A DNA stretch of 64,000 nucleotides, from NCBI GenBank assembly GCA_010909165.1, contig MU008163.1:1612001-1676000 (forward strand), read 5' to 3'. Shown one piece after another: positions 14,780-51,921 of this stretch (position 1 is its first letter; each line of letters starts with the position of its first letter). The notes below the pieces were generated by a model. It saw nothing but the letters and a program-made list of their open reading frames with translations, searched no databases and was not told the DNA's origin. Source of the stretch: Anthoceros angustus (Eukaryota; Plantae; Anthocerotophyta). Both the position numbers and the translations under genes were made by a program.

Positions 14780-16921
14780 GAATCCCACTAGCACAGTCCC
14801 AGTGCATGCCTTGCTCTCAATCTCTGCATGGAGCTTGCTTCCCAGATGCAAAGCTGCCAAATTTGCACATGAGTGCAGGAGGAACACAAATGTCTCGGAA
14901 TTGGGTACAGCGGTGCCTTCTTATCACATGACACTGTCGAGCAAAAGGGCTTCCTGGTCCATGCCCTGCTCGGAATACCCTGCGATTAAGGCAGTCCACG
15001 TCGCAACAACATCGTTTTCACCCACTCCGTCAAATACTCCCGGCGCACCCTCCAGGCTGCCAACACTTTGCATACATATGACCGAACTGTTGGCTATAAA
15101 CCAATCAGCCTCATGTCCCCCATCTCTGTCTTGCACATGAAGCTGCTTCCCTCTTACCAAACCTTGGATGCCCACATTTGTACATTTCTGAATGAGGCAC
15201 ACAAATGTCACACACAGTTGGGTACAGAGATGCCTTGTTCTTGCATGACATGGTAAAGACGAAGGGCTTCCTTCCTTCTGCCCTGCTGCGAATGCCCTAC
15301 AATTAGGACAGGCAATGTCACCAAGACCGTCCAACACTCTCTGAGCATCTTCCAAGCTGCCACACTTTTGGCTATACGCACATCAGTGTGACGTCCCTGC
15401 TCTCTAACTTGTGCATGAAGCTGCTTCCCCGTCTCCAAAGCCGGGGGTGCCTACACCTGCACATGCCTGCAGGAGGCACGCAATTGTCGCTGGATAGGGT
15501 GTAGTAACGCCCTCTTCTTGCATAGCGCTGTAGAGGCCAAGGGCTTCCAGGCTCATGCCCTGCTGGGAATACCATGAAATCATGGCATTCCACGTGACCA
15601 CATTGTCTCTATCAAGTCCATCAAACAATCCCTGAGCATCCTCCAGACTGCCACACTATGCTTATCAAGCTGCTGGCTACAAATGCATCAGCTCGATGTC
15701 ATAGTACTCTGAGTTTCGCATGAATCTAGTTTCCTGTCTCCAAAACTGGGGTTCCCATGCCTGCAGGGGGCAGATGAAAGTCACAGAATTGGGTCCTGTG
15801 GTGCCTAATGCTTGCATACCACTATAGAGATGAAGGGCTTCCTGTCCCATACCCTGCTGGGCATACCTTGCAATTAGAGAGGTCAATATCCCCACATCTT
15901 TGTGACCAAGTCCTTCAATCAGTTGCTCAGTATCCTGAACCCATGCAGCCACACTTCGCGTACATGCTTACCAAAGTGTTGATCACAGCTACATCAGCCT
16001 GATCTCCTTTTTCTCTGATTTGTGGATGAAGCTGCTTCCCCACCTCCAAATCTGGGTTACCTACACTCGCACATGCCTGTAGAGGGCACACAAATGTCAC
16101 AGAGTCGGGTGCAACCATGCCTTCTTCTTACATAGCTCTGTAGAGATGAAGGGCTTTCTGGTCCATGCCCTGCTGGGAATACCCTCCAAAAAGAGCAGTC
16201 CAAGTCACCAAATCCTTTTTATCAAGTCCGTCAAACCCACTGTGAGCATCCTCTAGGCTGCCACACTTTGCACACATGTCAACCAAACTGTTGGCTACAA
16301 CCACATCAGCTTGATGCCCATGTTAGCTAAACCACATCAGCTTGATGCTCTTGTCCATGTTTAAGATGGACGAGAAATGATAGAAGACAACATGAAGCAT
16401 CAGGTACAGCAACCATTGCAAACACATCCATCGCATCTTGCAAGAGCCTTCCATGTGAAGCATACATTCGCAAAATTGCACAGAAACGTATCTGACTGCA
16501 CCCCATACTCACCATCAAAGCATGGACTCTGCGACCTACAACAATATCCCCCTTCATCACACATTTTCCGGACAGCATGAAAGAAGATCTCAAAACAAAA
16601 CTCCACTCTATGTGCACCAGAACCCCCAAAGCCTCACACGGCCCTGTTCACATAGCCTGCCCACGATTTCCGCAGTCACCCCAGTTTCAAATCCTGCAGG
16701 CCTATCACGACGAGGGTCAGGATCTTCCAGCTGCTGGCTACGGCCCTGAGCTGGTGGCTTCCTGCAAGGGTGCTGCAGCTCGCAGCTTCCGTGTTTGCCG
16801 CCGGCTGGTTCCTGGAAGTCACAGTTACGTGGGTGGCAGCTCTTGAACAATTGCTTGTCAACTCACCAGGTTCTTTGGTCCGCCCTTGGCGTGACTCAAT
16901 CGCCACGCTCCAGGCAGCCAT
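14780..16921 (-). pseudogene. PLS-class pentatricopeptide repeat (PPR) pseudogene, cassette A
   Basis: Fragments such as [70 protein letters not shown] and NVVTWNAMISWYSQQGMSLEALGLY are split by frameshifts and stops. ATG at 16921 precedes a Ser/Arg/Ala-rich transit-like leader. No DYW domain was found. Confidence 0.9.
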
Positions 16922-19096
16922 GGCTCAGTGAAGCGTATGGAGAGCGTTTGGCGAGTGAGCAGGAAGAGTAAATAGCGCTCATTATAAATTGGAGCATTTT
17001 GATTTAATTTACAAGAGGTAACAAATCGGGCACCCATGAGGGTGTGCGCCGTCTGGTATGTTCAAATCTCTGGAGCTCACAAACGTTCTCTCGCCTGAGA
17101 GGACTCTCCTTGGGAATCTGTTTTTCGCGTCACTGGAACCCTACTACCACTTCGCAGACGCTTTCTTCCTCGCGCATTCTTGATCATGGCACGTCGCCGT
17201 CTCGACTTGCTGCTTAGGTCCCCTAATGGTTATTCATGCATTGGCGGCATAGCGATCGGAGTCTCAATGGTCTCATTGGTCTCATGGTTTCTGTACGAAA
17301 GGTACTGCGCGCGCACTGGAAGGACCGGATTATTGAACTATGCTCGCCGACTGTCAAAGCGTGACGGCGCAAATAGCAGGGATGACGGTCCGAGATGCAG
17401 TACACATTTTAAAGAGTGACTTCCGGATGTGTTTACTCTATACACATTAGGACAGTGTAGCTGCATCAGCGATCAGGCGCTCGGGGAACAACCACGTGAA
17501 TGTACGTCAATCAGTTGCTCAGTATCCTGAACCCATGCAGCCACACGACATGCTTACCAAAGTGTTGATCACAGCTACATCAGCCTGATCTCCTTTTTCT
17601 CTGATTTGTGGATGAAGCTGCTTCCCCACCTCCAAATCTGGGTTACCTACACTCGCACATGCCTGTAGAGGGCACACAAATGTCACAGAGTCGGGTGCAA
17701 CCATGCCTTCTTCTTACATAGCTCTGTAGAGATGAAGGGCTTTCTGGTCCATGCCCTGCTGGGAATACCCTCCAAAAAGAGCAGTCCAAGTCACCAAATC
17801 CTTTTTATCAAGTCCGTCAAACCCACTGTGAGCATCCTCTAGGCTGCCACACTTTGCACACATGTCAACCAAACTGTTGGCTACAACCACATCAGCTTGA
17901 TGCCCATGTTAGCTAAACCACATCAGCTTGATGCTCTTGTCCATGTTTAAGATGGACGAGAAATGATAGAAGACAACATGAAGCATCAGGTACAGCAACC
18001 ATTGCAAACACATCCATCGCATCTTGCAAGAGCCTTCCATGTGAAGCATACATTCGCAAAATTGCACAGAAACGTATCTGACTCGCACCCCATACTCACC
18101 ATCAAAGCATGGACTCTGCGACCTACAACAATATCCCCCTTCATCACACATTTTCCGGACAGCATGAAAGAAGATCTCAAAACAAAACTCCACTCTATGT
18201 GCACCAGAACCCCCAAAGCCTCACACGGCCCTGTTCACATAGCCTGCCCACGATTTCCGCAGTCACCCCAGTTTCAAATCCTGCAGGCCTATCACGACGA
18301 GGGTCAGGATCTTCCAGCTGCTGGCTACGGCCCTGAGCTGGTGGCTTCCTGCAAGGGTGCTGCAGCTCGCAGCTTCCGTGTTTGCCGCCGGCTGGTTCCT
18401 GGAAGTCACAGTTACGTGGGTGGCAGCTCTTGAACAATTGCTTGTCAACTCACCAGGTTCTTTGGTCCGCCCTTGGCGTGACTCAATCGCCACGCTCCAG
18501 GCAGCCATGGCTCAGTGAAGCGTATGGAGAGCGTTTGGCGAGTGAGCAGGAAGAGTAAATAGCGCTCATTATAAATTGGAGCATTTTGATTTAATTTACA
18601 AGAGGTAACAAATCGGGCACCCATGAGGGTGTGCGCCGTCTGGTATGTTCAAATCTCTGGAGCTCACAAACGTTCTCTCGCCTGAGAGGACTCTCCTTGG
18701 GAATCTGTTTTTCGCGTCACTGGAACCCTACTACCACTTCGCAGACGCTTTCTTCCTCGCGCATTCTTGATCATGGCACGTCGCCGTCTCGACTTGCTGC
18801 TTAGGTCCCCTAATGGTTATTCATGCATTGGCGGCATAGCGATCGGAGTCTCAATGGTCTCATTGGTCTCATGGTTTCTGTACGAAAGGTACTGCGCGCG
18901 CACTGGAAGGACCGGATTATTGAACTATGCTCGCCGACTGTCAAAGCGTGACGGCGCAAATAGCAGGGATGACGGTCCGAGATGCAGTACACATTTTAAA
19001 GAGTGACTTCCGGATGTGTTTACTCTATACACATTAGGACAGTGTAGCTGCATCAGCGATCAGGCGCTCGGGGAACAACCACGTGAATGTACGTCA
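15915..19096. repeat. Near-perfect tandem duplication of about 1.59 kb (15915-17506 / 17507-19096) spanning the PPR 5' half, the shared promoter and the 5' part of the orphan gene
   Basis: ORF-track pairs are offset by 1586-1587 bp. The junction at 17501-17520 (tgtacg-tca-atcagttgctc) shows tca microhomology. Confidence 0.92.
16922..17185. promoter_or_regulatory. Divergent intergenic region of about 265 bp between PPR (-) and orphan X (+), with a conserved TATA-like core
   Basis: The motif cattataaattgg(a/g)g...tttaatt(t)aca is conserved at about 16980, 18567, 29360 (variant ttcataaattggggaa) and 33487, followed by a conserved aaatcgg..cccatgagg block. Confidence 0.6.
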
Positions 19097-19433
19097 CACC
19101 AGCTTGTGGCTCTCCGGCACGAACTCCTATGTAACAGCTGCGTTCCGGAGCAAGGAAGCGGATCTCGATAAGCACGTCTTCAGCTTTTCGTTTAGAGAGT
19201 GGGATTGCCGTCTTCGACTTTGTAAGCTGTCATCCATCCTCAGCTTCTCGACTTCAGTCCTCTTGTCGTCTGGCCGATTGATGCCTTGCTTCGAAGGGGA
19301 AAAGATAACCGCATTCTTTCATTGCAAGTGCGAGTCGATCCTATTCATAATTGACGTGTGTTTGGTGATTGGGATGAGATACCAGAGCTGTATAATGTGC
19401 GGATTCTTGTCAAGCAATGTGAGGGCGGGGTAA
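18773..19433 (+). pseudogene. Orphan gene X, copy A (frameshifted; a partial duplicate lies at 17186-17509)
   Basis: MARRRLDLLLR plus a hydrophobic stretch, then a premature stop at 19006. Downstream cagcttgtggctctccgg and tttcgtttagagag...cgactttgtaagc align with copies B and C. Confidence 0.75.
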
Positions 19434-19671
19434 CATTGTGCACTTATTCTTTGCCACATAATTGCAAGATTTGGATTCAAGATCGCATAATATTATCATC
19501 CTGAGCTGAGCGCCGTCCCACCTAGTCAGCCTGGCCCTTACAAGAGCTCTTGCTTACAGCGTCCTATTTCACACTGTATCCTCATCTAAAATGTTTTCGA
19601 AGTCGACAGGCCATGAGCCAAAGTGTGTCCCGTGGTTCTGTAAGCTTATATTGGTGATCACCTTTTGGTTA

Positions 19672-25269: not shown

Positions 25270-27696
25270 TGGCGGCGGTGTCGATCCGGACAGTGGGCCT
25301 GGCGTTGCTGCTGCTGCTGCTGATGAATTCGGCGGCGGACGGCGGCCTAATTCCAGCAGGCCTCCGCCCGCAGTACTACAGGAAAACGTGCCCGCAGTTC
25401 CCCAACATCGTGCTGTCCACCATCCACACAAATCTGAGGAAGGATGTGCAGATCGCCGCGCACCTGCTCCGCCTTCTCTTCCACGACGCTGTCGTCAACG
25501 TAGTCCTCAGTCCCTCACCCGCGATTCAATTCTTGCTTCAATTCCGCCATCTCCAAGGTTCCACTGGGATTGAATCAGTTGTTCTGAAGAGACGTCGCAA
25601 TCCAATTTTCTTTGCACAGGGCATCGACGCCTCGGTCATGATCGACAGCACCCCCACCAACAGCGGCGAAAAGGACGCACTTCCTAACAGGTGAGAGTCG
25701 CCCGAACGCGACATCTACATCACATGAATTTCCCAGAATTGCCAGCGATGACCATCCACACGGGCCAGACGGCTGGAGAAGGAGAGCATCGACCCCGTTA
25801 CCTCCCGTATGCGAAATGGGCGCTCTACCATGAAAGCTACTTCCTTATGCTGAGAGCTTAGGTAGCTAACGTTGTACCGTACCAAATCAGATCTCTGGAC
25901 GGATTCACAATCATCGACGACATCAAAGCACAATTGGAGGCAGTGTGTCCGGGCACGGTCTCGTGCGCAGACATTCTCGTCATGAGCGTCCGAGACGCGG
26001 TGTTTCTGGTGCGTCGAGCTTTGTGATTGCAATGCATGTCGTCATACCTTGCAATTAGAGAGGTCAATATCCCCACATCTTTGTGACCAAGTCCTTCAAT
26101 CAGTTGCTCAGTATCCTGAACCCATGCAGCCACACTTGGCGTACATGCTTACCAAAGTGTTGATCACAGCTACATCAGCCTGATCTCCTTTTTCTGATTT
26201 GTGGATGAAGCTGCTTCCCACCTCCAAATCTGGGGTTACCTACACTCGCACATGCCTGTAGAGGGCACACAAATGTCACAGAGTCGGGTGCAACCATGCC
26301 TTCTTCTTACATAGCTCTGTAGAGATGAAGGGCTTTCTGGTCCATGCCCTGCTGGGAATACCCTCCAAAAGAGCAGTCCAAGTCACCAAATCCTTTTTAT
26401 CAAGTCCGTCAAACCCACTGTGAGCATCCTCTAGGCTGCCACACTTTGCACACATGTCAACCAAACTGTTGGCTACAACCACATCAGCTTGATGCCCATG
26501 TTAGCTAAACCACATCAGCTTGATGCTCTTGTCCATGTTTAAGATGGACGAGAAATGATAGAAGACAACATGAAGCATCAGGTACAGCAACCATTGCAAA
26601 CACATCCATCGCATCTTGCAAGAAGTCTGTCCCCCGCCATTCTGGGGTTCGCCGTTTAACAGGAGTGGGACGTTGTGAGACGTTGAGACGTTGAGCTTCG
26701 AGCCCCTCCTTCCCTCCTTCCTTCCTTCCTTGAGGATTGTACAATGTGGTGGTGATGGGATGTGCGCAGAGGGAAGGCCCGTTCTTCCCGGTGTACCTGG
26801 GCAGGAAAGACGGGCGGGCGAGCAGCGTGAGCGCAGCGATCGCCAACAACCCATCGTCCAACATCTTCGTGGACCAGGTGCTGGCGGCCTTCTCCGCGCT
26901 GGGGCTCGGGGTGGCGGACGCGGTTGCGCTCTCAGGCGCGCACACCATCGGGAAGGCCGGCTGCCGCGCCTTCGGCAGGAGGCTCACCAACTTCAACGGA
27001 ACCGGCCTCCCCGACCCCACGATTCCTCCCTCCTACCTTGCGCAGATCCTGGCCAACTGCAGCGTGAGCTCGTTCCGGGTGGACAACGATCCGCTCACCC
27101 CGACCGTGTTCGACAACCAGTACTACGTCGACCTGCTCGCCAGCCGCGGCCTCTTCCAGTCCGACCAGTACCTGCTCTTCGATCCCCGCACCAAGCCCTA
27201 CGTGCTCAAGTTCGCCGCCAACCAGCGCGCCTTCTTCTCGCAATTCAGCTCCTCCATCTTCGCCCTCAGCAATGTGGGAGTCCTCACAGGCCACGACGGC
27301 GAGGTCAGGACCAATTGCCGGGTCGTGAACCCGCTTCCTTCCCCTCCTCCCCCTCCTGCTCCTCCTGCTTCTCCTCCTCCTCCTCCCCCTGCTTCTCCTC
27401 CTCCTCCTCCCCTGCTTCTCCTCCTCCCCCTGCTTCTCCTCCTCCCCCTGCTTCTCCTCCTCCTGCTTCTCCTCCCCTGCTTCTCCTCCTCCTCCTCCCC
27501 TTGCTTCTTCTCCTCCTCCTCCCCCTGCTGCTGCTTCTCCGCCTGCAACTTCCCTGTTGATGGGACGCCAACGGCGGCACTGCCTCCTGCTGGTGCTACA
27601 CCACCGGCGGCTGAAGCTTCACCACCGGCGGCTGATGCTTCACCACCGGCGGCTGCTGCTTCACCACCGGCGTCCGATGCTTCACCCTGGTCATAG
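25270..27696 (+). CDS. Class III secretory peroxidase with a Pro-rich C-terminal extension (Prx-1); exons 25270-25499, 25620-25690, 25891-26008, 26770-27696
   Basis: Signal peptide followed by [77 protein letters not shown] and [11 protein letters not shown]. The tail contains SPPPP/ASPP repeats; a frame drift inside the C/T homopolymers is likely a sequencing error. Confidence 0.93.
25774..25846 (-). pseudogene. Degenerate tRNA-Ala(CGC) copy inside intron 2 of Prx-1
   Basis: The reverse complement aaggaagtagctttcatggtagagcgcccatttcgcatacgggaggtaacggggtcgatgctctccttctcca aligns end to end with the tRNA at 32232-32304, with mismatches in the acceptor, D and T stems. Confidence 0.85.
26045..26623 (-). 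other. PPR-pseudogene fragment of about 580 bp inside intron 3 of Prx-1; near-identical to 15863-16444
   Basis: catacc ttgcaattagagaggtc ... catccatcgcatcttgcaag matches cassette A apart from homopolymer-length differences and one or two substitutions. Confidence 0.9.
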
Positions 27697-28049: not shown

Positions 28050-29291
28050 TTTAGAGCACGCCGTGTTACGATTTGTCTTCCAACCAGTCCCTCATATGGC
28101 TGCCACACTTCGATATATGTTGCCCAAACTGTTGGCTGCAAACAGATATGGCCTGATGGCCTCCCATCTATGGAGTTGCTCCTCTGTTTCTAAAGCTTGG
28201 GTGCCCACATTTACACATGCCTGTAGAAGGCACGCTTGCACATGCCTGCAGGAGGCACACGAAAGTCACAGAAAGAGTCGGGTACCGTGATGCCTACTGC
28301 TTGCATACCACAGGAACCCCTTGCACATACCTGCACGAGGGAGACGAAAGTCACAGAATTGGTTACCGTGATGCCTGCTGCTTGTCGAGATGGAGGGCTT
28401 CCTGCCCCATCCCCTACTGGGCATACCCTGAAATTAGAGAGGTCCATGTCACCACAGTCTTTGTGACCAAGTCCGCCATGACAACAGTTACTGAGCATCC
28501 TCCATATGCATGCTGCCACACTTCGCATACCTGTTTACCAAACTGTTGACCGCAACCGCATCAGATCGATCATCTCCCCTTCCTCTGCTTTGTGCATGAA
28601 GCTGCTTCCCCACCTCCAACGCTGGGTTGCCTACACTTACACATGCATGTAGAAGGCACACAAATGTCACCGAGTCGCGTATACGCAACTATCCCTTCTT
28701 TGTGCATATTAGCTATGTAGAGATAAAGGGGTTTCTGGCCCATTCCCTGCTGGGATACCCTCAATAACAGCAGTTCAAATCACCACAGTCCCCTTTTCGT
28801 CAAGTCCGTCAAACACAGCATCCTCTAGGTTGCCACACTTTGCGACATATCGACCAAACTGTTGGCTACAACCACATCAGCTTGATGCTCTTGTCCATGC
28901 TTAACAGGAGCAGAAATGATACCATTGCAAGCATATCCATGGCACCTCGGAACCTTCTATGTGAAGCATACATTGGCAGGATATGATAGCACTGGAACGT
29001 ATCCGACTCGCACCCCATATTTCGAAAGACAACTCCTCTAAATCTCTATCTGTGCCAGAACACCCAATGCCCCAACAGCCTCTATCAAACGGCTCTGCTC
29101 AAATAGCCTGCTCACGATCTCAGCAGTCACGCCAATTTCATATCTTGCAGGCCTGATCCTACGAGGGTCAGCATCCTCCAGCTCCTGGCCAACGCCCCCG
29201 AACTGGCTTTCCTGCAACGGTGCTGCAGTCCGCAGCTTCCGTGTTTGCCACTGGCTTCCGTGTTCGCCATTCCCACGCTCCGGACAGCCAT
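28050..29291 (-). pseudogene. PLS-PPR pseudogene, cassette B
   Basis: DSVTFVCLLHACVSVGNPALEVGKQLHAQ..RG..DAVAVNSLVNRYAKCGS and similar fragments. ATG at 29291 and its leader are homologous to those at 16921. Confidence 0.88.
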
Positions 29292-29556
29292 GGCTCGCTC
29301 TTGAAAGCCCCTTTGGAGCGGGTTTCGATGGCGAGAAAGACGATAAATAAAGTCCATATTCATAAATTGGGGAATTTCAATTTAATTCACAAAAGCACAC
29401 AAATCGGAACCCATGAGGCTCGGCGCCATATCTGCAGCTCACATTTAAGCAGACAATTTTCGGTATAAGAGTTTTTCTCTCTGGTAAACTGTTGTTTTGC
29501 GTCCCTGGAAAGCCCTACGACTTCCCTGGTGCATTCGTCCTCACGCGTTCTTGATC

Positions 29557-30177
29557 ATGACACGTCCCCGTCTCTACTACGTGCGGCGTAGGCCTCGAAC
29601 TGTTTATGCACTCCTTGGCGGCGTAGTGAGCGCACTGGTCTTACTGATTGTTTCGAAAGGTATGATGCGCGCACTGCAAGGATTGGATCAGAGGAACACG
29701 AAGAACCGGACTATGTCCGTGGAGTATCAAGGCCCGCTTTCGCCGGACTATCTACGCCTGTTTTCGCCGGACTATCAACGCCTGATTTTGGAGAAAGATC
29801 CAACTCTCGATCAGTTCAAGCTTTGTACGCTCTTGAAGTTTGTGGAATTGTATCTGAAAGAGGGGATCAGGCAAACGGGGCTCAACGAAATCGAGAACTG
29901 GCAGGGATATCTGGATGTTCATAACAGGCTTGTTGCTCTCCGCTCCGAAATTCCATTTATCGACTGCCTTCCGGAGGATGCTGACCCGAGTGAGATCGGT
30001 AAGAACGCCTTTCACGTTTCGTTTAGAGAGTCGGCTTCCTGTCGACTTTGTAAGATTTCGTCCATCCTCAACTTCTCGACTTCAGTCCTTTGTCGTCCGG
30101 CTGATTGCTGCCTTGCTTCCAATTGGAAAAGACAACCGCGTTTTTTCATTACAAGTGCGAGTCGGTCTTATCCATGA
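29557..30177 (+). CDS. Orphan gene X, copy B: open reading frame of a small type-II membrane protein (basic N-terminus, one TM segment, helical domain); the 3' end may be spliced at ATC G|gtaag (about 29999)
   Basis: MTRPRLYYVRRRPR-TVYALLGGVVSALVLLIVS-...LLKFVELYLKEGIRQ...WQGYLDVHNRLVALRSEIPF. It lies downstream of the conserved TATA-like block and has homologues at 18773 and 33692. The family is not recognised. Confidence 0.7.
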   Translation: MTRPRLYYVRRRPRTVYALLGGVVSALVLLIVSKGMMRALQGLDQRNTKNRTMSVEYQGPLSPDYLRLFSPDYQRLILEKDPTLDQFKLCTLLKFVELYLKEGIRQTGLNEIENWQGYLDVHNRLVALRSEIPFIDCLPEDADPSEIGKNAFHVSFRESASCRLCKISSILNFSTSVLCRPADCCLASNWKRQPRFFITSASRSYP

Positions 30178-30849
30178 TGATTGATGTGCAGGCCTAGGGT
30201 ACCGTATATGATTGAGTAACATGCCAGAGCTGCAAAGAGTAACATGCCAGAGCTGCAAAATGTGCGGATTCTTGTCAAGCTTGTACAGGGCAGCAATGTG
30301 AAGGAGGGGTAACACTCTGCACTTATTCTTTGCCACAAAAGTTCAAGATTCCATAATATTATCATCCTGAGCTGAGCAATTGTGAAGAACTCTTCGTTAG
30401 CATCCTATTTCACAATGTCTTGATTCATCTAAAACGAGTTTGCGAATTGTGACGTGTTATAACCCTCTATTGCTGAGGATCCTTTCAAGATTACGAGTGA
30501 GAACAGTCTAACTTGAACTGAACATTCTCATTGTACACGCAGGGTGACGCTTGCAAGAGGCACAAATGGCCGCGTCTTCCACCTGTGAAAGCTTAAACAC
30601 ACAGACGACTCTACATCGTCGATCCTGAGGAGTTTGCAATTGGTTTTAGGTGTAACCGATCGAGGACCTTGATGTGTTTCGATGCTGACGAGACTAAACC
30701 ACAAATCTATCCCGAGTGTTTTGATTCTCCACCGACATATGTAACGTTCACGATCTCTCTGGTGGCTAGTGTTCACCAGGAAGAGGCTGCCCTGGTACTT
30801 CGCGATACGGCCCCTGTCAGGGTTTTCCTGCAGCTCACACGGAGGCAAA

Positions 30850-31354
30850 CATTTGCCGTGTCGATTGTCGCATCTTCCAAGCTGCCACACGTTTGCAAGC
30901 TCCTGGTTACAAACACATCAGGTCTCTAGTTTCCGCATGCAGGTGCTCCCTCCCTCCCCGCCCCCCGTTCAATGCCGGAGTGCCCACACCTGCGCATTCA
31001 CTGTAAAGCGGGAGGGCTTCCTGCCCCATGCCCTGCTGGGAATATCCTGCTATCATCGCATTCCACGTCACCACTTCCTTAAGATCAAGTCCATTCACGG
31101 GTCACTCTCACGTTCCTCGGGGATGCCTGTGCAGCAGAACAGGATGCTCTTCTCACTTTACCTCTTGTCCCACCCACGTGCAGCCTCCAGATATATTTCT
31201 TCTCCACAACTTCTCCTTGCAGAAGATCCGCATTCAGCCAGACATCCTCTTCCTCTTGGACGGGCTGGCTTCTGCCAAAGTGCTCCCTCCCGACTTGGCT
31301 GTGCGCCAGCAGGCACTTCCTTGATGAAACAGACATTGTGCCCCAAGCTCTCAA
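30850..31354 (-). pseudogene. Truncated PLS-PPR remnant (downstream module of cassette B)
   Basis: LDLKEVVTWNAMIAGYSQQGMGQEALPLYSECAGVG; homologous to about 21780-22230. Confidence 0.85.
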
Positions 31355-32231: not shown

Positions 32232-32304
32232 TGGAGAAGACGGGCATCGATCCCGTTACCTCCCGTATGCGAAACGGGCGCTCTACCATTTGAGCTACTC
32301 CCCC
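32232..32304 (-). tRNA. tRNA-Ala(CGC)
   Basis: GGGGGAG TA GCTC AAATGGTA GAGC G CCCGT TTCGCAT ACGGG AGGTA ACGGG ATCGATG CCCGT CTTCTCC A folds into a full cloverleaf. The ATCGATG T-loop is typical of eukaryotic tRNA-Ala. Confidence 0.95.
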
Positions 32305-33691: not shown

Positions 33692-34256
33692 ATGGCACGT
33701 CCTCGTCTCTACTACTTGCTGCGTAGGCCTTGAACTGTGTATGCATTTCTTGGTAGCGTAGTGATCGCACTGGTTTTAGTGATTATTTCGAAAGCTATGA
33801 CGCGCACACTGCAAGGATCGGATCAGAGGATCATGAGGGTCCGGACAAAGCCCGCGGACTATCAATGCCTGCTTTCGCCGGACTATCAACGCCTGATTTC
33901 GCTCCAAGATCCAAGTCCCAGTCGGTTCAGGCTTTTTATGCTCTTGGGATTTGTGGAATCGTATCTGAAAGAGGCGATCAGGGAAAGGAGGTTCAACGAA
34001 ACCGAGCAGTGGCAGGCATATGTGGATGTTTTCGACAGGCTTGTTGCTCTCCGCTCCGAAATTCCATTTATCGGCTGCGTTCTGGAGGAAGCTGACCCGA
34101 GTGAGATCGGTAAGAACGCCTTTCACGTTTCGTTTAGATCGTCGGCTTGCTGTCGACTTTGTAAGCTTTCATCCATCCTCAACCTCTCGACTTCAGTCTT
34201 TTTGTCGTCCGGCTAATTGATGGCTTGCTTCCTATTGGAAAAGACAACCGCATTCT
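33692..34256 (+). pseudogene. Orphan gene X, copy C (premature TGA at codon 14; 3' part resumes at about 40725 after the Copia insertion)
   Basis: Codon-for-codon homologous to copy B; CGA>TGA at 33731-33733; accgc-attct|LTR...LTR|attct-ttcattgcaag. Confidence 0.85.
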
Positions 34257-34521
34257 TGTTAGAGATTCAATCCTCTGCTACTTACTCTAGTATATTAGGA
34301 TATATTAGGATATTGCACTATCGAGTCTAGGGCTTACCTCCTCGATAGTTGCCTAGCCTAAGGGCTATATATATATGTAGCACCCTGTGCACCATATTGA
34401 CGTGTACTGTGGAGCCTATCTAAGCTAGTGGTGCTATTGCGTGCCATCCATTGCCTCCTTGTGTCCGCTAACCGTGTTGATCCGCGGCGCTGCCCTGGTT
34501 GTGTCTGAGCTAGTTCTTTCA
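34257..34521 (+). repeat. Copia LTR 1 (265 bp)
   Basis: tgttagagattcaatcc ... gagctagttctttca, followed by the PBS. Confidence 0.92.
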
Positions 34522-37433
34522 TGGTATCAGAGCGGGAACACTAATCGCGAGACTTGATAAGAGAGGACGGAGTTGTGATGGCGATGGGCTCAGTAACCAC
34601 CGCGGCCTTGAGGACGCGGGTGTTTGATGGAACGGAGTTCCATGTATGGAAAAGGTCCATGAAGGTTCTGCTGATGGCAGAGGACGCGTATGGCATTGCC
34701 GAGGGCAAAGAGCCGAAACCCGAAGATGAGGGAAGAGAGCAGAAAGAATGGATGCAGAGAGACCACAAGGGTACAGCTCTCCTATATATGAATCTCTACG
34801 GCAAATCAAGGTTGAGAACCGCATAAGGGCACGGAGTACATTTGGAATCTTCTCAATGAGAAATATGGCCAGAAGGGAGCAGGTGAAGTATTTCACTCGT
34901 TTTGTCGTGTGACGACATTGAAGTATTCAGACGAAGACGATTTGCGAAAGCACATCGACACCTTTCACGAACTGTTTACAGCGCTAGCATTAGCTAACGA
35001 GCGCTTTGCTATCCAGGAGGACATACAAAAGATGTTTCTATATCGTCTATGCCCAAGCTTGGTCGTGGTTCATAGATTTCCTAATAGCCCAAGACACTCT
35101 CACATGGGAGGAGGTCACCTCTAAGATGTTGGCGAAGGAGACTCGCCATTGGACGCAATGGCGGATCTTCAACAGTCCGAGCATGCGATGTTCATCAAGG
35201 GGAAGGGACGGAACAACCGGAACAAGGACAAGCAGGGGGAGTCCTCGCAGGGACAGAAGGACAAGAGAATAGTGAAGAGGGGACAGTGCCGGAAATGCTT
35301 CAAGTATGGTCATTATGAGAAGGATTGCAAGGATCGGAAGACCGCACATCTCACGGAGGGTGAGAGTGAAGGTGAGGTTGCGGAGGCAACGCTCACAGAA
35401 GAAGTATCGCACGCGTGCTACAGTACACAAGCGAAACGATACCTGACGATAGATTCTGCATGTACATCCTTTATGGTGAAGGATAAGGAGCCCTTCAAGA
35501 CTACGGGAGGGAGAAGATGCGCCTCTAGGGAACGATAGCGAGATAGGCGCCGAGGGTGTGGGGAGTACAGCTCGATTGCTCGACGAGGTCAAGGCAATGG
35601 AAGGAGCGCGCTTTTGTACCGACCTACGAAATCTCATGTCGTGGCACCATTGACCGATGCAGGTCTGCAGGTCCTTTTTACGAAGAAGGAAGTTTTGTTT
35701 CTGAAGAATGGTCAGATGCACGGCGATGTGGTGGCAAAAGGCCACCGTACAGGGAACTTGTACCAGATGGAGGTTCCTGACGACCAAGAGGTTCTGACAG
35801 TGTCGGAGAAAGGTGGAAATGCCTTACTGTGGCATAGACGGTTTGGGCATACCAACTTGAAGTTTCTCCTGGAGATGGAGCGGAAGAAGCTCGTGACAGG
35901 CATGGAGCTCCAGAAGGCAGAACTTGGTCTGTGTGACGCTTGTATGAAAGGCAAGCATCCCCGAAGGTCTTATGTTTCACCACAAGAGAGCAAAGAAGTC
36001 TTGGAACTTGTCCACTCGATCTTTGGACCAATGCAAGTGGAAGCAAGGATGATACAAAGTAGATACTATATTTCGCTTATCGACGACTACATAGGAGAAT
36101 ACGTGTACTTCTGGAAGAAGAGTGACGCCTCAAGCATTTCGGATGTTCGTAATCATGGAGAAACAAACAGGAAAGAAGTTGAAGAAACTTCGAACTGATG
36201 GGGAGGAGAGTATTTGAGTAAACTCTTCAAGGATGAATGCACAGCGGCCGGAATTGAGAGGCAGTTGATGACAAGGTACACGCCGCAACAGGCAGGGATC
36301 GCCGAGCGGAAGAATCGTACCATCTGCAATGGCGCTAGGAGTATGCTAGCGGAAAGTAGGATGCCAAAATATTTTGGGCGTATGCAGGGCAGCATACACG
36401 ATGTAATATGTCAATTACCATGGCGCTAGGTGGCTCTATGACACCCCATGAAGCTTGGTTTGGTGAGAAACCAAATGTCTCACACTTGAGAGTGTTTGGT
36501 CACAGAGCATATGCGCATGTTCCTAAGCAACCGCGAAGAAGTTGGACGATGTAAGCATGTGCGCTTCATTGGTTATGCGAATGAGCGAAAGGCTTACATT
36601 GTGGGATCCCGCCAGCGTATGCATGAAAGTTCGATGTCGTGTTCGATGAGAACAATATTGAAGTCATGCGAGAGCACTCGCTACGGCATCAACTCGAGTT
36701 TATCCAGACACCTTCCTTGTCCCAAATCCACCAATGACAGCAGAAGAGGATCACCACACACCGGAGGGTGATGGTGAGGACATCCCAGCAGGTGAGGTCA
36801 TACCACCTATTGTTCCCGCAGGAATTCTCGGAGGAGGAAATTCAAAAGGAGCACAACAGCAGCAGCATGTTGAGGAGTTAGTTCCAGCATTGGAGGATGC
36901 AGAGGACGAACCAACAGCAGCTATTCCGAGACGGTCGACAAGGGTTCGACAGCCTTCGCGGAAGGTCCTCGAGAATGCCCAGCTCAACATGGTGAGCGGA
37001 CCAGAATGGTGTTTTCTTCTCGAAGATGATATCCCGCTCACAATTGAGGAAGCACGAAACGGACCTGAAGGTGAGTTCTGGAATGAAGCTATTCGTACTG
37101 AGTATAATTCGATGCTCGAAAACAACGCTTGACGTTGGTTGATTTGCCACCCGGAGAAAAGTCCGACGCAAGTGGACTTTCAAGAAGAAGTACAATGCCG
37201 ACGGATCTGAAAGGCATAAAGGCGAGACTAGTGGCTCGGTTTCACTCAAGTGAAAGGGCTGGACTACGAGGAGACCTTCTCCCGTAGTTCGCATGAATAG
37301 ATCTCAAAGGCGTGATTCGGATCTCATACCTCCGCACCGAGGAGATGGTGGCGGATATCTTCACCAAGGCGCCGGCGCAAAGTTTACATTTTCGTTCGGA
37401 TCTTGGCGTAAGTAGCTTTAGCTTGAAGGGGAG

Positions 37434-37706
37434 TGTTAGAGATTCAATCCTCGCTACTTACTCTAGTATATTAGGATATATTAGGATATTGCACTATCGA
37501 GTCTAGGGCTTACCTCCTCGATAGTTGCCTAGCCTAAGGGCTATATATATATGTAGCACCCTGTGCACCATATTGACGTGTACTGTGGAGCCTATCTAAG
37601 CTAGTGGTGCTATTGCGTGTGCTATCCATTGCCTCTCCTTGTGTCTGCTAACTGTGTTGATCCTGTGCGTTGCCCAGACTGTGTTGTGTCTGAGCTAGTT
37701 CTTTCA
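37434..37706 (+). repeat. Copia LTR 2 (shared middle LTR, 273 bp)
   Basis: Preceded by the PPT and followed by a PBS. Confidence 0.92.
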
Positions 37707-40463
37707 TGGTATAAGAGCGGGAACACTAATCGCGAGACTTGATAAGAGAGGACGGAGTTGTGATGGCGATGGGCTCAGTAACCACCGCGGCCTTGAGGAG
37801 GCGGGTGTTTGATGGAGCGGAGTTCCATGTATGGAAAAGGTCCATGAAGGTTCGATGGCGGAGGGGAGCGTATGGCATTGCAGGGCAAAGAGCCGAAACT
37901 CAAGATGAGGGAGAGAGCAGAGAGAATGGATGCGGAGAGACCACAAGTCTGACTCTCCTATATATGAATCTCTCGGTCCAGTGAAGGTCGGAGAACCGCA
38001 TAAGGGCACGAGTACATTTTGGAATCTTCTCAATGAGAAATATGGCGAAGGGGCGGTGAAGTATTTCACTTGTTTTGTCGTGTGACATTGAAGTATTCGA
38101 CGAGACGATTTGCGAAAGCACATCGACACCTTTCACGAACTGTTTACAGCGCTAGCATTAGCTAACGAGCGCTTTGCTATCCAGGAGGACATACAAAAGA
38201 TGTTTCTATATGAATCTATGCCCGAAGCTTGGTCAGGGTTCATAGATTTCCTAATAGCCCAAGACACTCTCACATGGGAGGAGGTCACCTCTAAGATGTT
38301 GGCGAAGGAGACTTGATTGGGCAATGGCGGGATCTTCAACAGTCCGGAGCATGCGATGTTCATTAAGGGAAGGGACGGAACAACCGGAACAAGGACAAGC
38401 GGGGGAGTCCTCGAGGAAGGACAAGAGAATAGTGAAGAGGGGCGGTCGGGAAATGCTTCAAGTATGGTCATTATGAAGGATTGCAAGGATCGGAAGACCG
38501 CATCTCACGGAGGGTGAGTGAAGGTGAGGTTGCGGAGGCAGCCTCGCGAAGAAGTACCAGCGTGCTATAGTACCTGAGCGATAGATTACGCATGTACATC
38601 CTTTATGGTGAAGGATAAGGAGCTCCTTCAAGACTACGGAGGGAAGGCAGTGCGCCTAGGGAAGCGATAGCGAGATAGGCGTCGAGGGTGTGGGGGAGTC
38701 TGCTCAGTTGCTCGGCGGCGAGGTCAAGGCAATGGAAGGCATGTACGCACCTCATTAGAAATCTCATGTCGTGGCACCATTGACCGTCTGGTCTGCGGGT
38801 CCTCTTACGAAGAAGGAAGTTTTGTTTCAAGAATGGTCGGATGCGCGATGTGGTGGCGAAGGCCACCGTCTGGAACTTGTACCGGATGGAGGTTCCTAAC
38901 AAGAGGTTACGGCGTCGGAGAAAGGTGGAAATGCCTTCTGTGGCATGACGGTTTGGGCATACCAACTTGAAGTTTCTCCACGGAGATGGAGAAGCTCGTG
39001 GCAGCATGGAGCTCAGGCGAGCTTGTTGCATGTGGCTTGTATGAAAGGCAAGCATCCCGAAGGTCTTATGTTTCATCACGAGAGAGCAAAGAAGTCTTGG
39101 AACTTGTCCACTCGATCTTTGCGGACCAATGCAAGTGGAAGCAAGGATGATACAAAGTAGATACTATATTTCGTTTATCGGACTATGGGAGAAACGGTGT
39201 ACTTCTGCGGAAGAAGAGGCTCTCAAGCATTTCGGATGTTCGAGCGTGCGGAGAAACAAACAGAAAGAAGTTGAAGAAACTTGATGGGGGAGAGTATTTG
39301 AGTAAACTCTTCAAGGATGAATGCACGCCGGAATTGAGAGGCGATTGACGACAAGGTACACGCCCATAGCAGGAGGATCGTGCGGAAGAATCGTACCATC
39401 TGCAATGGCGCTAGGAGTATGCTAGCGGAAGTAGGATGCCAAAATAGGGGCGTGGCGGTACGTCTGAGAATATGTCAATTACCATAGGTGGCTCTATGAC
39501 ACCCCATGAAGCTTGGTTTGGTGAGAAACCAAATGTCTCACACTTGAGAGTGTTTGGTGCGTAGCATATGCATGTTCCTAAGCAACCGCGGAAGAAGTTG
39601 GACGACGAAGCATCAAGTGCGGCTTCATTGGTTATGCGAATGAGCGAAAAGGCTTCTGATTGTGGGATCCGTCGCAGCGGATGCATGAAAGTTACGATGT
39701 CGTGTTCGATGAGAACAATATTGGAAGTCATCACGGAAACACGGTATTTACGGACCTCAACTGAGTTTATCCAGACACCTTGTCCCGGATCCACCAATGA
39801 CAAGAGGATCACCACAGGAGGGTGATGGTGAGGACATCAGCGGTGAGGTCATACCACCTATTGTTCCCAGGAATTCTCGGAGGAAATTCGGAAGAACTGA
39901 AGACATGTTGAGGAGTTAGTTCCGGCATTGGAGGATGCGGAGGGCGAACCAAGCAGCTATTCCGAGACGGTCGACAAGGGTTCGACCTTCGGAAGGTCCT
40001 CGAGAATGCCGACTCAACATGGTGGCGGACGAATGGTGTTTTCTTCTCGAAGATGATATCCGCTCACAATTGAGGAAGCACGAAAGCGGACACGAAGGTG
40101 AGTTACGGAATGAAGCTATTCGTCGAGTATAATTCGATGCTCGAAAACAACGTTTGGGCGTTGGTTGATTTGCCACCGGAGAAAAGCCGTCATTGCAAGT
40201 GGACTTTCAAGAAGAAGTACAATCTTGACGGATCTGGAAAGGCATAAGGCGAGACTAGTGGCTCGGTTTCACTCAAGTGAAAGGGCTGGACTACGAGGAG
40301 ACCTTCTCCCCGGTAGTTCGCATGAATAAATCTCAAAGGCGTGATTCAGATCTCATACCTCCGCACCGAGGAGATGGTGGCGGATATCTTCACCAAGGCG
40401 CTCGGCGCAAAGTTTACATTTTCGTTCGGATCTTGGCGTAAGTAGCTTTAGCTTGAAGGGGAG

Positions 40464-40724
40464 TGTTAGAGATTCAATCCTCGCTACTTACTCTAGTATA
40501 TTAGGATATATTAGGATATTGCACTATCGAGTCTAGGGCTTACCTCCTCGATAGTTGCCTAGCCTAAGGAGCTATATATGTAGCACCATGTGCACCATAT
40601 TGACGTGTCTTGTGGAGCCTATCTAAGCCGGTGGTGCTATTGCGTGTGCCATCCATTGCCTCGCGTATCTCTAGCGTGTTGATCCTGCACGTTGCCACGT
40701 GTTGTGTCTGAGCTAGTTCTTACA
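40464..40724 (+). repeat. Copia LTR 3 (261 bp)
   Basis: Preceded by the PPT, ends ...ttcttaca, then the TSD attct. Confidence 0.92.
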
Positions 40725-43700
40725 ATTCTTTCATTGCAAGTGCGAGTCGATCATATCCATGTTGATTGATGTGCAAGCCTAGGGTACCGTGCTGCATGAT
40801 GTTCGGATTCTTGTCAAGCATATACAGGGCAGCAATGTGAAGTAGGGGTAACATTCTGCACTTATTCTTTGCCACAAAAGTTCAAGATTCAATAATATTA
40901 TCATCCTGAGCTAAGCGATTTCGAAGAACTCTGCCTTGCAGCATCCTATTTCACATGTCTGGACTCATCTGGAACGTTTATGAATTTTGTGGACTAGCTG
41001 CAGTGAGCCAAACTCTGACGTGTGTCACGGTTTCGTCCTGTAACCCTATCTTGCTGAGGATCCTTTCAAGATTACAAGCGAGAACTGTCTAACTTGAACT
41101 GAACATTCTCATTGTACACGCCGGGTGACGCAATTGCAAGAGGCACAAATGGCCGTGTCTTCAAACCTGTGAAAGCTTAACTACACAGACGACTCTACAT
41201 CGTCGATCCTGAGGAGTTTGAACGTATGAGGTTTTCTAACGTGTTAGGGATTTCGCACTTGGTTTTAGGTGTACCCGATAGAGGACTTTGACGTGTTTCG
41301 ATGCTGACGAGAGTAAACCACAAATCTGTCCCGAGTGTTTTAATTGTCCACCGACATATGTAACATTGACGATCTTTCTCACTTTCTTACACTAGCGGGA
41401 TGTACATGGCTAGTGTTCACCAGGAAGCGGCTGTTCCCTTGCGTGTTGGCCGGGTTTTCTGGCAGCTGTCACGGAGGCAAAAATTTGCCGTGTCGATTGT
41501 CTCGGCTCCTGACAGACAGCCCAGGCTTCAAATGATCAGCATGCAAGAAATCGTTATCTGAAAAACAAAACCAAAATCGTATCTGTTAATGAGTAGTTAC
41601 TTCACATTGGGCGCGGAAGGCCCCTCGGTTGCTTCATTTGTTTTGGACTCAGGCCTTCGGACTAGCTCACCTCTTGAGGCGTACATCTATGATTTAAGGC
41701 TTCTTTGATGCACTTGCTGGCGAAGAGACTGGACATGGATGGTGTTGAAGAGTAGATGTCCGCGTTGAAAGTAATTTGACCTGGGGTCCTGAACTTTGCA
41801 AATTGCGGATGCGCTGTGAGATGGCTTCATGATCGCTGTAGGTTTTACGTACGAGTTCAATCGAGGTTAATGATCTTGCAATGCAGAATATCATCAGATG
41901 TTAGCCTTCAAGAGATTTTCGTCTATGGGGAAACCGTTTGATGCCTTTTGCATTTTAGGTCAATTGATCGTACAGATCAAAACTATTCGGATTTAGCCCG
42001 AAGGGTCTCGACGACTGCTACTAGTAATAGGAGGACGGGAACTCGGAGATGATAGTGATCAATCAACATTTCTTCATATTTTGAAATACATCTCACAGCC
42101 AATTACCGTTAGCTTGAATATGAACGTTAGACTTTGCAATCTTACCAGGAGTTCACATCTATATCTATAGGCGTTTGCACTTGGCAAGTTGGGCCTGCTA
42201 AATTCTTCGAGGTGGAGACTAGGATCCTGTTATATTTATTCGAGGCTCACTAATCACTCATGAGCCATGGAATCGCCTAACCGATCATGCGGGTGCACAA
42301 ATCTATGTGACGGCTACTTGGAGGATGCCAGATTCCTGCACTAGTAGTACTGTGGAAGCTTGGAAGCAGGCTGTGACCGGCCAGCAACCTGTTTCCAGAC
42401 ATGGAGGCAATATTTATGTCAGTTGCTTGCTATTAACCTTGCAACCGCATGTTGCAACATAATATTCCCTTTTCAAATTGCAGTGTCATATATCGATCCA
42501 GGCTAGGGCAGAGTTCTGCGTGGCCGAAGTACACAGTGGATGTGCAATTAGTGTGGACTTGCAGATATTGAGGGGAACAATTCAGAAGGAGCCGACAACG
42601 ACCGACGGCTCAGCTATTGAAGGAAACAGTGGTAGTGATACCAGCACGGACCCAGGGTACCTTGGATCACCGCTTTACATAGCTACACCTGTACATGTAC
42701 AGTCACAAGCAGCCTAACCAGAAGTGTGCCTATTCCACTGAGTCCCAGCTTTGGGTCCGCTGCAGGATCCGGAGTGGGCCTGTCACAGGGAGGCAAACCA
42801 TGAGAGCGCCTATAAGACGGAGCGAAACCCTTTGCTGGGGTGCCAAGAAACCCAGGAGTGGGCCTGTCCCACGGATGCCGACTGTCATACGGAGCGCAAT
42901 CCATAGCCCTGTCACACGGAGCCATACTAGAAGATGCAGGGAGCAAGCATGGATCGATTCTCCTTCAAGCAGCAAGCCTAAGAGAACCCAGCCTAGTCAT
43001 ATCACGGGTGATCGGCCGCAGTCTCCCTTACGAGGAACCGCCATCATCGTTCCCGATAATAGAGGATTGGATGCATTTCTTCCTCCTGGGGCAGTGGGGA
43101 CGCACACTGTCGTTTCCCACAACCAAGAGCCCTCGGCATCTCGCCCTGCTGAGACCCATAGGCAGAACACTGTCATTCCCGAGCCCCAGAATGCGGAGCG
43201 AGGGGCAATGCCAATCATGACAGTTTCTCTGGAACACCTGCTGACATTACCTCCCAAGAATGTTTGGGTACTCAGTCACGGTGCGAAAGAAAACAAATCA
43301 TGCTTATTCGACATCTATATTCGAGAGCATAAAAACAAATTGTACTAAAACTGTAGAAACTTTTAGGCCGACTCACGGGATATGGTATTCGACATATCCT
43401 CACTAGTCTAGATACTTGACATAGCTATTCGACATATCACTTTTGTCGGAATTGAGCGTGCCAGCCGGAACGTTTGGAATGTTTCTATGTCGGTATTTTC
43501 TGGTTCTGTCTGGTAGCGCTGTAGATGCAAACACTGTCTTGGGATGTCAACCTCGATTCAAGTGTTAACTTGTAAGGAGGAATGGCTGCATCGCATGCTT
43601 CTCTTGGTGCTCCAAAAATTGGAGTGGTCTGTCCCCTGATTTTGTGAAGTGACAAAATGAAGTGAAATCCAAAACCTTGGTCAGTGCATTAGTTCAGATC

Positions 43701-50663: not shown

Positions 50664-51921
50664 ATGTTGAGTGATGGTAATCTTCTTCATAGATTATCTA
50701 TGAAGCTTTGGAAAAAATGGGTTCGATCTTACAGTCATGGAAGAGTGTTTTTGCTAACGATTGTAATTTCGATTCTTGCTATCCCTTTCATGCTGCATAA
50801 TTGTAGTAATGAGTTCCGTGCCAACTACAAAGCTTCTCCAATCTATCTCCGATATGTAGGTTTTTTTAGACCATTGTGGGGAACCCCTCCTAAACCTTTT
50901 GAGTATGTTGTTCATTTCTATGGAGAAGATTTGAGTCACGAGAAATTATGTCACTTGCATGGGTGGGCACCTCGTAGCAAACCAAGAAGGGTCTTTGATG
51001 CAATTTTGTTCGGCAATGAAGTGGATATTCTCGAGATAAGATTAAGAGAACTTCAAAATGAAGTAGACAGGTATTTTACATTCAATGTTTATCACTGTGG
51101 CTATTGTATACATGTTTCTAGTTTGACACTATGTTCTCACCAAATATTAATGCCTTATGTCATTTAGGTTTATAATAATGGAATCTCACACAACTTTCAC
51201 GGGTTTGCCCAAAAAGTTATATTTCGTGGACAATGAGGAGAGATATTCATTTGCAAAAAACCTTATTGCACACAATTCAACTTTGGGACACAAACTAGGA
51301 AAACATGAACATGCTTTTCACCAGGAGGATGAGCAAAGGGATGCAATAAATAGCTTATTGAAAGCAAATGGGATTGCAGATGGGGATCTATTGATCATGT
51401 CAGATGTGGATGAAATTCCTAGCAAACATACAATTAATTTGCTAAAATGGTGTGACGGAATTCCATCTGTACTGCATCTACAATTGAAAAATTATTTATA
51501 TTCATTTGAATTTCCACTTGATTATGGTTCTTGGAAGTCCTCTGCACATGTTTTTCAGTCTGGTAAGACATCGTATGGCTTACGTGAGAGACAGACTGAT
51601 GTAATATTAGCTGATGCTGGTTGGCATTGCAGTTTTTGTTTCAGACATATAGAGGACCTTCAATTTAAAATTAAAGCGTACAGTCATGCAGATAGACTAA
51701 AATATCATCCCCAGGTGCTTGATTCAACTCGCATACAAGAACATGTTTGCAATGGAGTTAACTTATTTGATAGCTTTCCTCAAGAGTATACCTATAGAGA
51801 TTTAATAGGTAAAATGGGTCCTCCCAATCCATCATATTCTGCGGTGAATTTACCTTCTTGGGTGTTGAAGAATGTAGATAAATTTAGTTTTCTTCTACCA
51901 AGGAATTGCATTCGACACTAG
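50664..51921 (+). CDS. Glycosyltransferase family 17 (beta-1,4-GlcNAc transferase III / MGAT3-like); exons 50664-51070 and 51168-51921; the exact start is uncertain
   Basis: N-terminal TM segment, PLWGTPPKPF, HGWAPRSKPRRVFDAILFGNEVDILEIR..EL, ES..TFTG..K.LYF, LLIMSDVDEIPS, SFEFP.D..SW, DAGWHCSFCFR, K.KAYSHADR and FLLP.NC; 97-bp GT-AG intron. Confidence 0.93.

Follow-up and report, generated by a model that had tools for sequence, protein, structure and literature searches.

Orphan plant genes of the kind that diverge rapidly after local duplication lack detectable relatives, are short, consist of one or two exons, occur in tandem or segmental copies with rapid turnover and show a high ratio of replacement to silent changes. 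The defensin-like, SCR/SP11 and LURE-type peptides of plants are small recognition proteins, secreted or membrane-bound, whose families diversify by birth and death. A third system for comparison is the unprocessed pseudogene pair left by segmental duplication, for which neutral decay predicts about a quarter of the changes to be silent, frameshifts and no periodicity.

The locus described here, gene X, lies in a window of 64,000 nucleotides (64 kb; the whole stretch of Anthoceros angustus DNA that was analysed). X is like orphan plant genes in having no detectable relatives, a short protein, local copies and an excess of replacement changes, and unlike them in having a single intact copy; it is known here from sequence alone. 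With the defensin-like, SCR/SP11 and LURE-type families X shares a local cluster, pseudogenised members and changes concentrated in one domain, but it is not cysteine-rich, lacks the pattern of a cleavable signal peptide, starts with a basic N-terminus and a putative membrane helix, and has no Pfam match; by analogy, X appears to resemble these families in evolutionary mode only, with no membership in them. Three of the four copies of X (A1, A2 and C) fit unprocessed pseudogenes, the unit having been copied along with its non-coding flanks, but the comparison of copy B with copy C shows none of the features predicted by neutral decay. X is presented as a candidate member of a familiar class, the fast-evolving orphan genes. 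The reading that we favour, and to which we give an even chance of being right, takes X for a young coding exon, restricted to its lineage, of a small single-pass membrane protein with a C-terminal domain that evolves at about twice the rate of neutral DNA.

Results

A locally duplicated unit with one intact copy of gene X

The window is nuclear land-plant DNA that contains two class III peroxidase genes (PF00141; one at about 26.7-27.7 kb, plus strand, the other at about 44.4-45.4 kb, minus strand), a pyruvate kinase gene, a GT17 glycosyltransferase gene, LTR retroelements and many scraps of PPR genes. Self-comparison of the window showed that gene X is a portion of a locally duplicated unit present in four copies, A1, A2, B and C. 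The copies and the features around them are as follows.

17186-17509, plus strand: X copy A1, the same sequence as the start of A2, truncated by a 1.59-kb tandem duplication
18773-19165, plus strand: X copy A2, an old frameshifted relic with X-like pieces split over two frames and with stops
28211-28900 and 30907-31098, minus strand: PPR scraps on either side of copy B (PF13041 and PF01535, with scores not above threshold)
29380-29556, plus strand: conserved stretch directly 5' of the ATG of copy B (B-C identity 93%, versus 85% inside the frame)
29557-29998, plus strand: X copy B, the only intact copy, with an ATG start and a frame that reaches a candidate GT donor at 29999
32232-32304, minus strand: tRNA gene between X copies B and C (Rfam RF00005, 57.7 bits)
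33692-34111, plus strand: X copy C, in an approximately 1.6-kb duplicate of B 29288-30870 (85-91% identity)
34257-40724, plus strand: tandem LTR retroelement of 6,468 nt that splits unit C, with three LTRs of about 265 nt and two bodies of about 3.2 kb
40725-41501, plus strand: remainder of unit C 3' of the retroelement, with about 89% identity to its homologue, B 30146-30870
51157-51921, plus strand: GT17 glycosyltransferase ORF (Pfam E=3e-109) in an AT-rich island (GC 33-38%)

Read without splicing, the frame of copy B is open as far as a stop at 30175-30177 (206 codons). Copy C carries the same frame with 61% protein identity to B; its codon 14 is an in-frame TGA (33731-33733) where B has CGA, a stop missing from the preliminary description, and copy C is probably a pseudogene. 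Copy A2 retains the ATG and a start that is basic and then hydrophobic. The tandem duplication that truncates A1 is head-to-tail (15915-17509 / 17507-19096, 99.5% identity). Copies A1 and A2 are dead, and B is the sole intact member of the four local copies. The A copies and B are 67-76% identical across the flanks and the first 44 codons, and the 30 nt surrounding the ATG are common to A, B and C. BLAST returned no significant A-B match over B 29689-29927, where a forced alignment with A2 gave 54% identity. The conserved stretch at 29380-29556 is a putative promoter or 5' leader of copy B. In the remainder of unit C, many indels relative to B are not multiples of three.

The retroelement inside unit C has TG..CA ends, and the 5-bp target-site duplications on its two sides (ATTCT, 34252-34256 and 40725-40729) match perfectly. 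Its primer-binding site is presumably of the tRNA-iMet type, and the element is small and looks non-autonomous. It lies 257 nt 3' of the shared B/C frame, 5-10 nt ahead of the candidate acceptor position. LTR1 and LTR3 are 88.8% identical, which is close to the divergence of the B-C flanks, so that copy C was probably interrupted for most of its history. LTR1 and LTR2 share stretches of 100% identity and LTR3 is more diverged, suggesting exchange among the LTRs, and dating based on them is only rough because of these signs of exchange. Within the window, nothing points to a derivation of X itself from a transposable element: Pfam gave no transposable-element domain, and the LTRs and target-site duplication mark only the insertion inside unit C.

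Several other observations concern the surroundings. PPR repeats comparable to the scraps flanking copy B occupy 14.8-16.3 kb, 21.1-21.8 kb and 26.0-26.5 kb. A segment of about 580 nt with PPR-like repeats occurs at 15862-16445, 17507-18031 and 26043-26623 with 98-99% identity, and one of its copies sits between two groups of peroxidase ORFs (about 25.1-25.7 and 26.7-27.7 kb), which suggests that the segment was copied very recently or is mobile, and it may lie in a peroxidase intron. At third codon positions the GT17 gene has a GC content of 0.28, where the remaining genes of the window have 0.45-0.92; the closest database match to GT17 is 59% identical.

Predicted protein and gene model

Four further features of copy B bear on the product that it would encode.

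29602-29655, plus strand: candidate signal-anchor or transmembrane helix (residues 16-33), hydrophobic, after an Arg-rich N-terminus
29738-29789, plus strand: in-frame 24-nt tandem repeat of SPDYxRLx units (Tandem Repeats Finder)
29999-30155, plus strand: putative intron of 157 nt, with GT at 29999 and AG at 30154-30155
30156-30184, plus strand: putative second exon, read by eye, of nine codons (VRVGLIHDD) and a stop

The putative gene model thus comprises exon 1 at 29557-29998, a GT..AG intron and a short exon 2 that extends to 30184. By eye, a comparable tail is legible in C (VRVDHIHVD) and in A2 (VRVDPIHN), and the donor site of A2 is altered to AT. The candidate intron is more conserved than the frame, with 91% B-C identity and 83% A2-B identity at 30001-30145. 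Just 3' of the candidate second exon, copy B has a perfect 23-nt tandem duplication of its own (30214-30259). The SPDYxRLx units, counted by eye, number three in B and two in C. AlphaFold2, run on the single sequence of copy B, returned a helical model with a helix at residues 14-46; its overall pLDDT of 57 is poor, and confidence was best in the hydrophobic region (mean pLDDT 76 at residues 21-30). The codon-usage score of X is negative, on a scale that was trained on 569 codons of the known genes of the window and is non-discriminating. Translation of the frame, the splice model, the membrane topology and a role in recognition or conflict are predictions read from the DNA.

Searches for relatives of X returned none in Pfam at E<=1, in a word search of 5.8 billion proteins, in an exhaustive HMMER search of 1.84 billion representatives or in the PDB (best E=0.25). 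The ESM Atlas likewise gave no relative, and its "recognition" of X fell below the level reached by most real families. The exact ORF product is absent from public assembly records, and the eight metagenome loci that matched the conserved start motif are all chance 19-23-mers. A Pfam match of copy C to a bacterial solute-binding family scored 21 bits, which is under the cut-off, and was put down to chance. The public protein databases contain no close relative of the host, the best matches of a peroxidase and of GT17 being 42% and 59% identical, respectively. The absence of relatives of X is weak evidence, because the nearest match of even a conserved enzyme of the window is only 59% identical. 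The searches therefore weakly suggest that X is an orphan, with no homologue in databases that lack close relatives of the host.

Excess of replacement changes between copies B and C

The preliminary description had reported that 28 of 80 codons differ between B 29761-30000 and C 33872-34111, all of them replacements and not one silent, and that the changes are divided 13/18/5 over codon positions 1/2/3. Both counts were reproduced exactly. The alignment of the two intervals is gap-free at an offset of 4111, and misalignment was rejected as the cause of the pattern since the C-terminal block aligns without gaps. For the N-terminal part, the earlier counts of about 5 silent and about 22 replacement codons were corrected to 4 and 17 in 51 codons. 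Over the whole alignable frame (about 135-136 codons), 47 replacement codons compare with 4 silent codons, and the changes by position are 23/28/10.

The Nei-Gojobori estimates for the whole frame are dN 0.195 and dS 0.082. A pairwise dN/dS above 1 was obtained by GY94 maximum likelihood over all codons (omega 3.3, LRT 10.2-10.8, p=0.001). Omega rose to 7.7-8.3 when the model was fitted to the 85 C-terminal codons (p=0.0003-0.0004) and was 1.6-1.7, not significant, in the N-terminal approximately 50 codons. In a permutation that kept the type of every substitution and moved it at random among sites of matching base and CpG status, 12.1 silent codons were expected in the whole frame and 4 observed (P=0.003), and 6.8 were expected in the C-terminal half and none observed (P=0.00025). 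The changes peak in one patch.

29788-29923, plus strand: hypervariable patch (codons 78-122), where B and C differ at 30 of 136 nt (22%)

Given the flank rate of 10.2%, the probability of at least 30 differences in this patch, which lies inside 29689-29927, is 4e-5.

The excess of replacement changes between B and C is real and beyond chance for a single planned test. The p values are nominal and come from one paralogue pair. At least 35 selection-type observations were made on this genome, with the attendant look-elsewhere effect, and values of 0.001-0.003 are less impressive because of that number of observations. Only B and C align across the C-terminal domain; A2 needs two frameshifts, and its domain is unalignable.

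Local controls, indels and divergence profile

Among 37 non-coding duplicate windows from the same 64 kb, drawn from the LTR element pair, the A-B tail, the PPR repeats and the B-C flanks, none showed three-base periodicity at p<0.08. The three-phase count is 15/23/5 for X (p=0.003) and 21/13/31, the normal coding pattern, for the peroxidase gene pair (p=0.02). The periodicity of X equals that of a genuine gene in strength and is opposite in sense. As to indels, the 1047 nt of B-C flank contain 14 events, 12 of them not multiples of three, and the 444-nt frame contains one, an in-frame tandem-repeat unit of 24 nt (P(<=1)=0.018).

No part of the duplicated unit has diverged more than the frame (15.2% between B and C, versus about 7-12% in the flanks, with about 7% in the DNA 5' of the frame at 29380-29556 and 9-12% in the 3' DNA). 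Positions 1 and 2 differ at 18.8% of sites versus 10.2% in the flanks (Fisher p=0.0003), and position 3 differs at 7.4%, on a par with the flanks at 10.2% (p=0.36). Between A2 and B, the older pair, identity is 54% in the middle of the frame, no better than noise, and 74-89% in the flanks. The first 29 codons of A2 and B differ by 9/10/2 at the three codon positions, and third positions are changed at 7% of sites versus 26% in the non-coding flank; that third positions are more conserved than the flank is unpredicted by plain positive selection. When changes were polarised with A2, B had 3/5/1 (8 of 9 at positions 1-2) and C had 3/2/5, both being small numbers.

The best-conserved section of the duplicated unit is non-coding, namely 30001-30400 just 3' of the X frame. 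Compared with 19166-19511 and with 34112-34257 plus 40725-40960, it shows 83-89% A2-B identity versus 54-74% in the frame, has no Rfam match and includes indels whose lengths are not divisible by three. This section may be a regulatory or RNA element.

These controls bear on the rival explanation that survives best, namely that X is no gene but a chance ORF in duplicated, repeat-rich intergenic DNA and that the three-base pattern is a fluke from scanning many frames. We consider this explanation unlikely, but of some weight. The setting of X agrees with it: three of the four copies are broken, the unit is surrounded by PPR fragments on the other strand, an LTR element and tandem duplications, X has no relatives and no family, its fold is poor, its codon-usage score is negative, many comparisons were made on this genome and the most conserved parts of the unit are non-coding. 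The poor fold prediction, the lack of relatives, a codon-usage score that lends no support and the dead copies A1 and A2 also stand against a reading by selection. However, a non-gene needs several roughly independent coincidences, namely an in-phase periodicity (P=0.003), at most one indel in the frame (P=0.018) and a peak at positions 1-2 (p=0.0003); moreover, the same phase recurs in A2-B, and 0 of the 37 local non-coding controls are periodic.

Clustered changes and mutation bias

Multi-nucleotide adjacent changes can yield false signals of positive selection (bioRxiv 10.1101/165969). X is like such cases in that three B-C clusters of two to four adjacent changes each (29791-94, 29836-38 and 29920-23) add replacement changes, and it is unlike them in that the signal stays in single-hit codons alone. 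Of the 44 single-hit codons, 6 are changed at position 3 (P=0.003); 25 of the 44 lie in the C-terminal half, none of them silent, and one of these 25 is changed at position 3 (P=0.0005).

Decay of CpG dinucleotides, by its nature, is expected to strike both strands equally. Sites involved in CpG number 24/24/26 over the codon positions, and 8/11/2 of them are changed; in NCG codons, a tally by eye gave seven transitions at position 2 and none at position 3. A bias of CpG or base composition was rejected as the cause, since CpG sites are spread evenly over the codon positions and the permutation preserved base and CpG context.

The second rival explanation accepts X as a real gene that is decaying or weakly constrained, with omega about 1, and attributes the excess to multi-nucleotide events, a raised local mutation rate and noise in about 60 substitutions. 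It is consistent with the non-significant omega of 1.6-1.7 in the N-terminal half, the several clusters of adjacent changes, a family that is visibly dying (the stop in C, the frameshifts in A2) and a C lineage that looks neutral at the polarised sites. The stop and the retroelement in C, moreover, argue against the selection reading, since silent changes would be expected from C if it decayed neutrally. On the other side, the excess stays after all multi-hit codons are dropped, the position test on the 25 single-hit C-terminal codons still giving P=0.0005, and position 3 keeps to the flank rate with positions 1-2 doubled, which is not expected of a mutation hotspot. We regard this second explanation as decidedly unlikely, more so than the absence of a gene.

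Other reading frames, strands and RNA

The observation that the frames whose wobble falls on position 2 of X contain stops was confirmed, each having 3-6, most of them at identical positions in B and C. Both frames have omega of about 0.5 (p=0.05-0.07), and the stops common to B and C exclude selection on either of them after the copies arose. When the likelihood analysis was repeated in all six frames, omega was far above 1 in the ORF frame only. An antisense frame at 29752-30015, open in both B and C, gave omega 1.2, and plus-frame 2, which is without a start codon, terminates differently in B and C. No alternative frame had a Pfam match, and no Rfam family was found at the X locus. A structured RNA family was rejected because Rfam gave no match at the locus, and an antisense of a recognisable PPR gene was rejected because PPR motifs are confined to the flanks.

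The weakest rival, in which the periodicity reflects constraint in an overlapping frame, on the other strand or in an RNA and the plus-strand frame is a by-product, is very improbable: a minus-strand frame whose second position is the third of X counts 23/10/28, resembling the peroxidase pair (21/13/31), it and plus-frame 2 have omega about 0.5 and the antisense at 29752-30015 is open in both copies, but that ordinary-looking minus-strand frame is interrupted by 4-5 stops within 85 codons, of which four occupy identical positions in B and C, plus-frame 2 lacks a start codon and ends differently in the two copies, the open antisense frame has omega 1.2 and neither Pfam matches nor an Rfam family were found.

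Discussion

In the reading that we favour, X would belong to a small local birth-and-death family in a land plant. Copy B would encode about 150 residues, comprising an arginine-rich N-terminus, one membrane helix and a helical C-terminal domain. Since the duplication of B and C, and on the older branch to A, the C-terminal domain would have taken up replacement changes at about twice the rate of neighbouring non-coding DNA, with silent sites holding the rate of the neighbourhood and frameshifts being excluded. Such a pattern would be the expectation under diversifying or directional selection on the protein.

The preliminary description had gone further and taken the substitutions to suggest a molecular arms race. 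The statistical excess behind that interpretation withstood the analysis of omega, the permutation, the indels and the divergence peak; the arms race itself would be a further step, drawn from one paralogue pair in a family in which C, A1 and A2 are broken. In its fullest form, copy B would be an expressed, hornwort-lineage-specific type II membrane protein, with a recurrently diversifying extracellular or lumenal helical domain engaged in recognition conflict. Its partners could be, for example, microbes or symbionts, or the conflict could be between gametes, with the dead A copies and C as losers of the birth-and-death process. We give this fullest version little credence.

If X is not a gene, the locus is a warning that an excess of replacement changes between two sequences can look convincing in a dying duplicate. 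Should X prove to be a functional gene, it would offer a clean case of adaptive evolution in a recently born membrane protein, from an early-diverging lineage of land plants in which, to our knowledge, very few fast-evolving recognition genes have been described.
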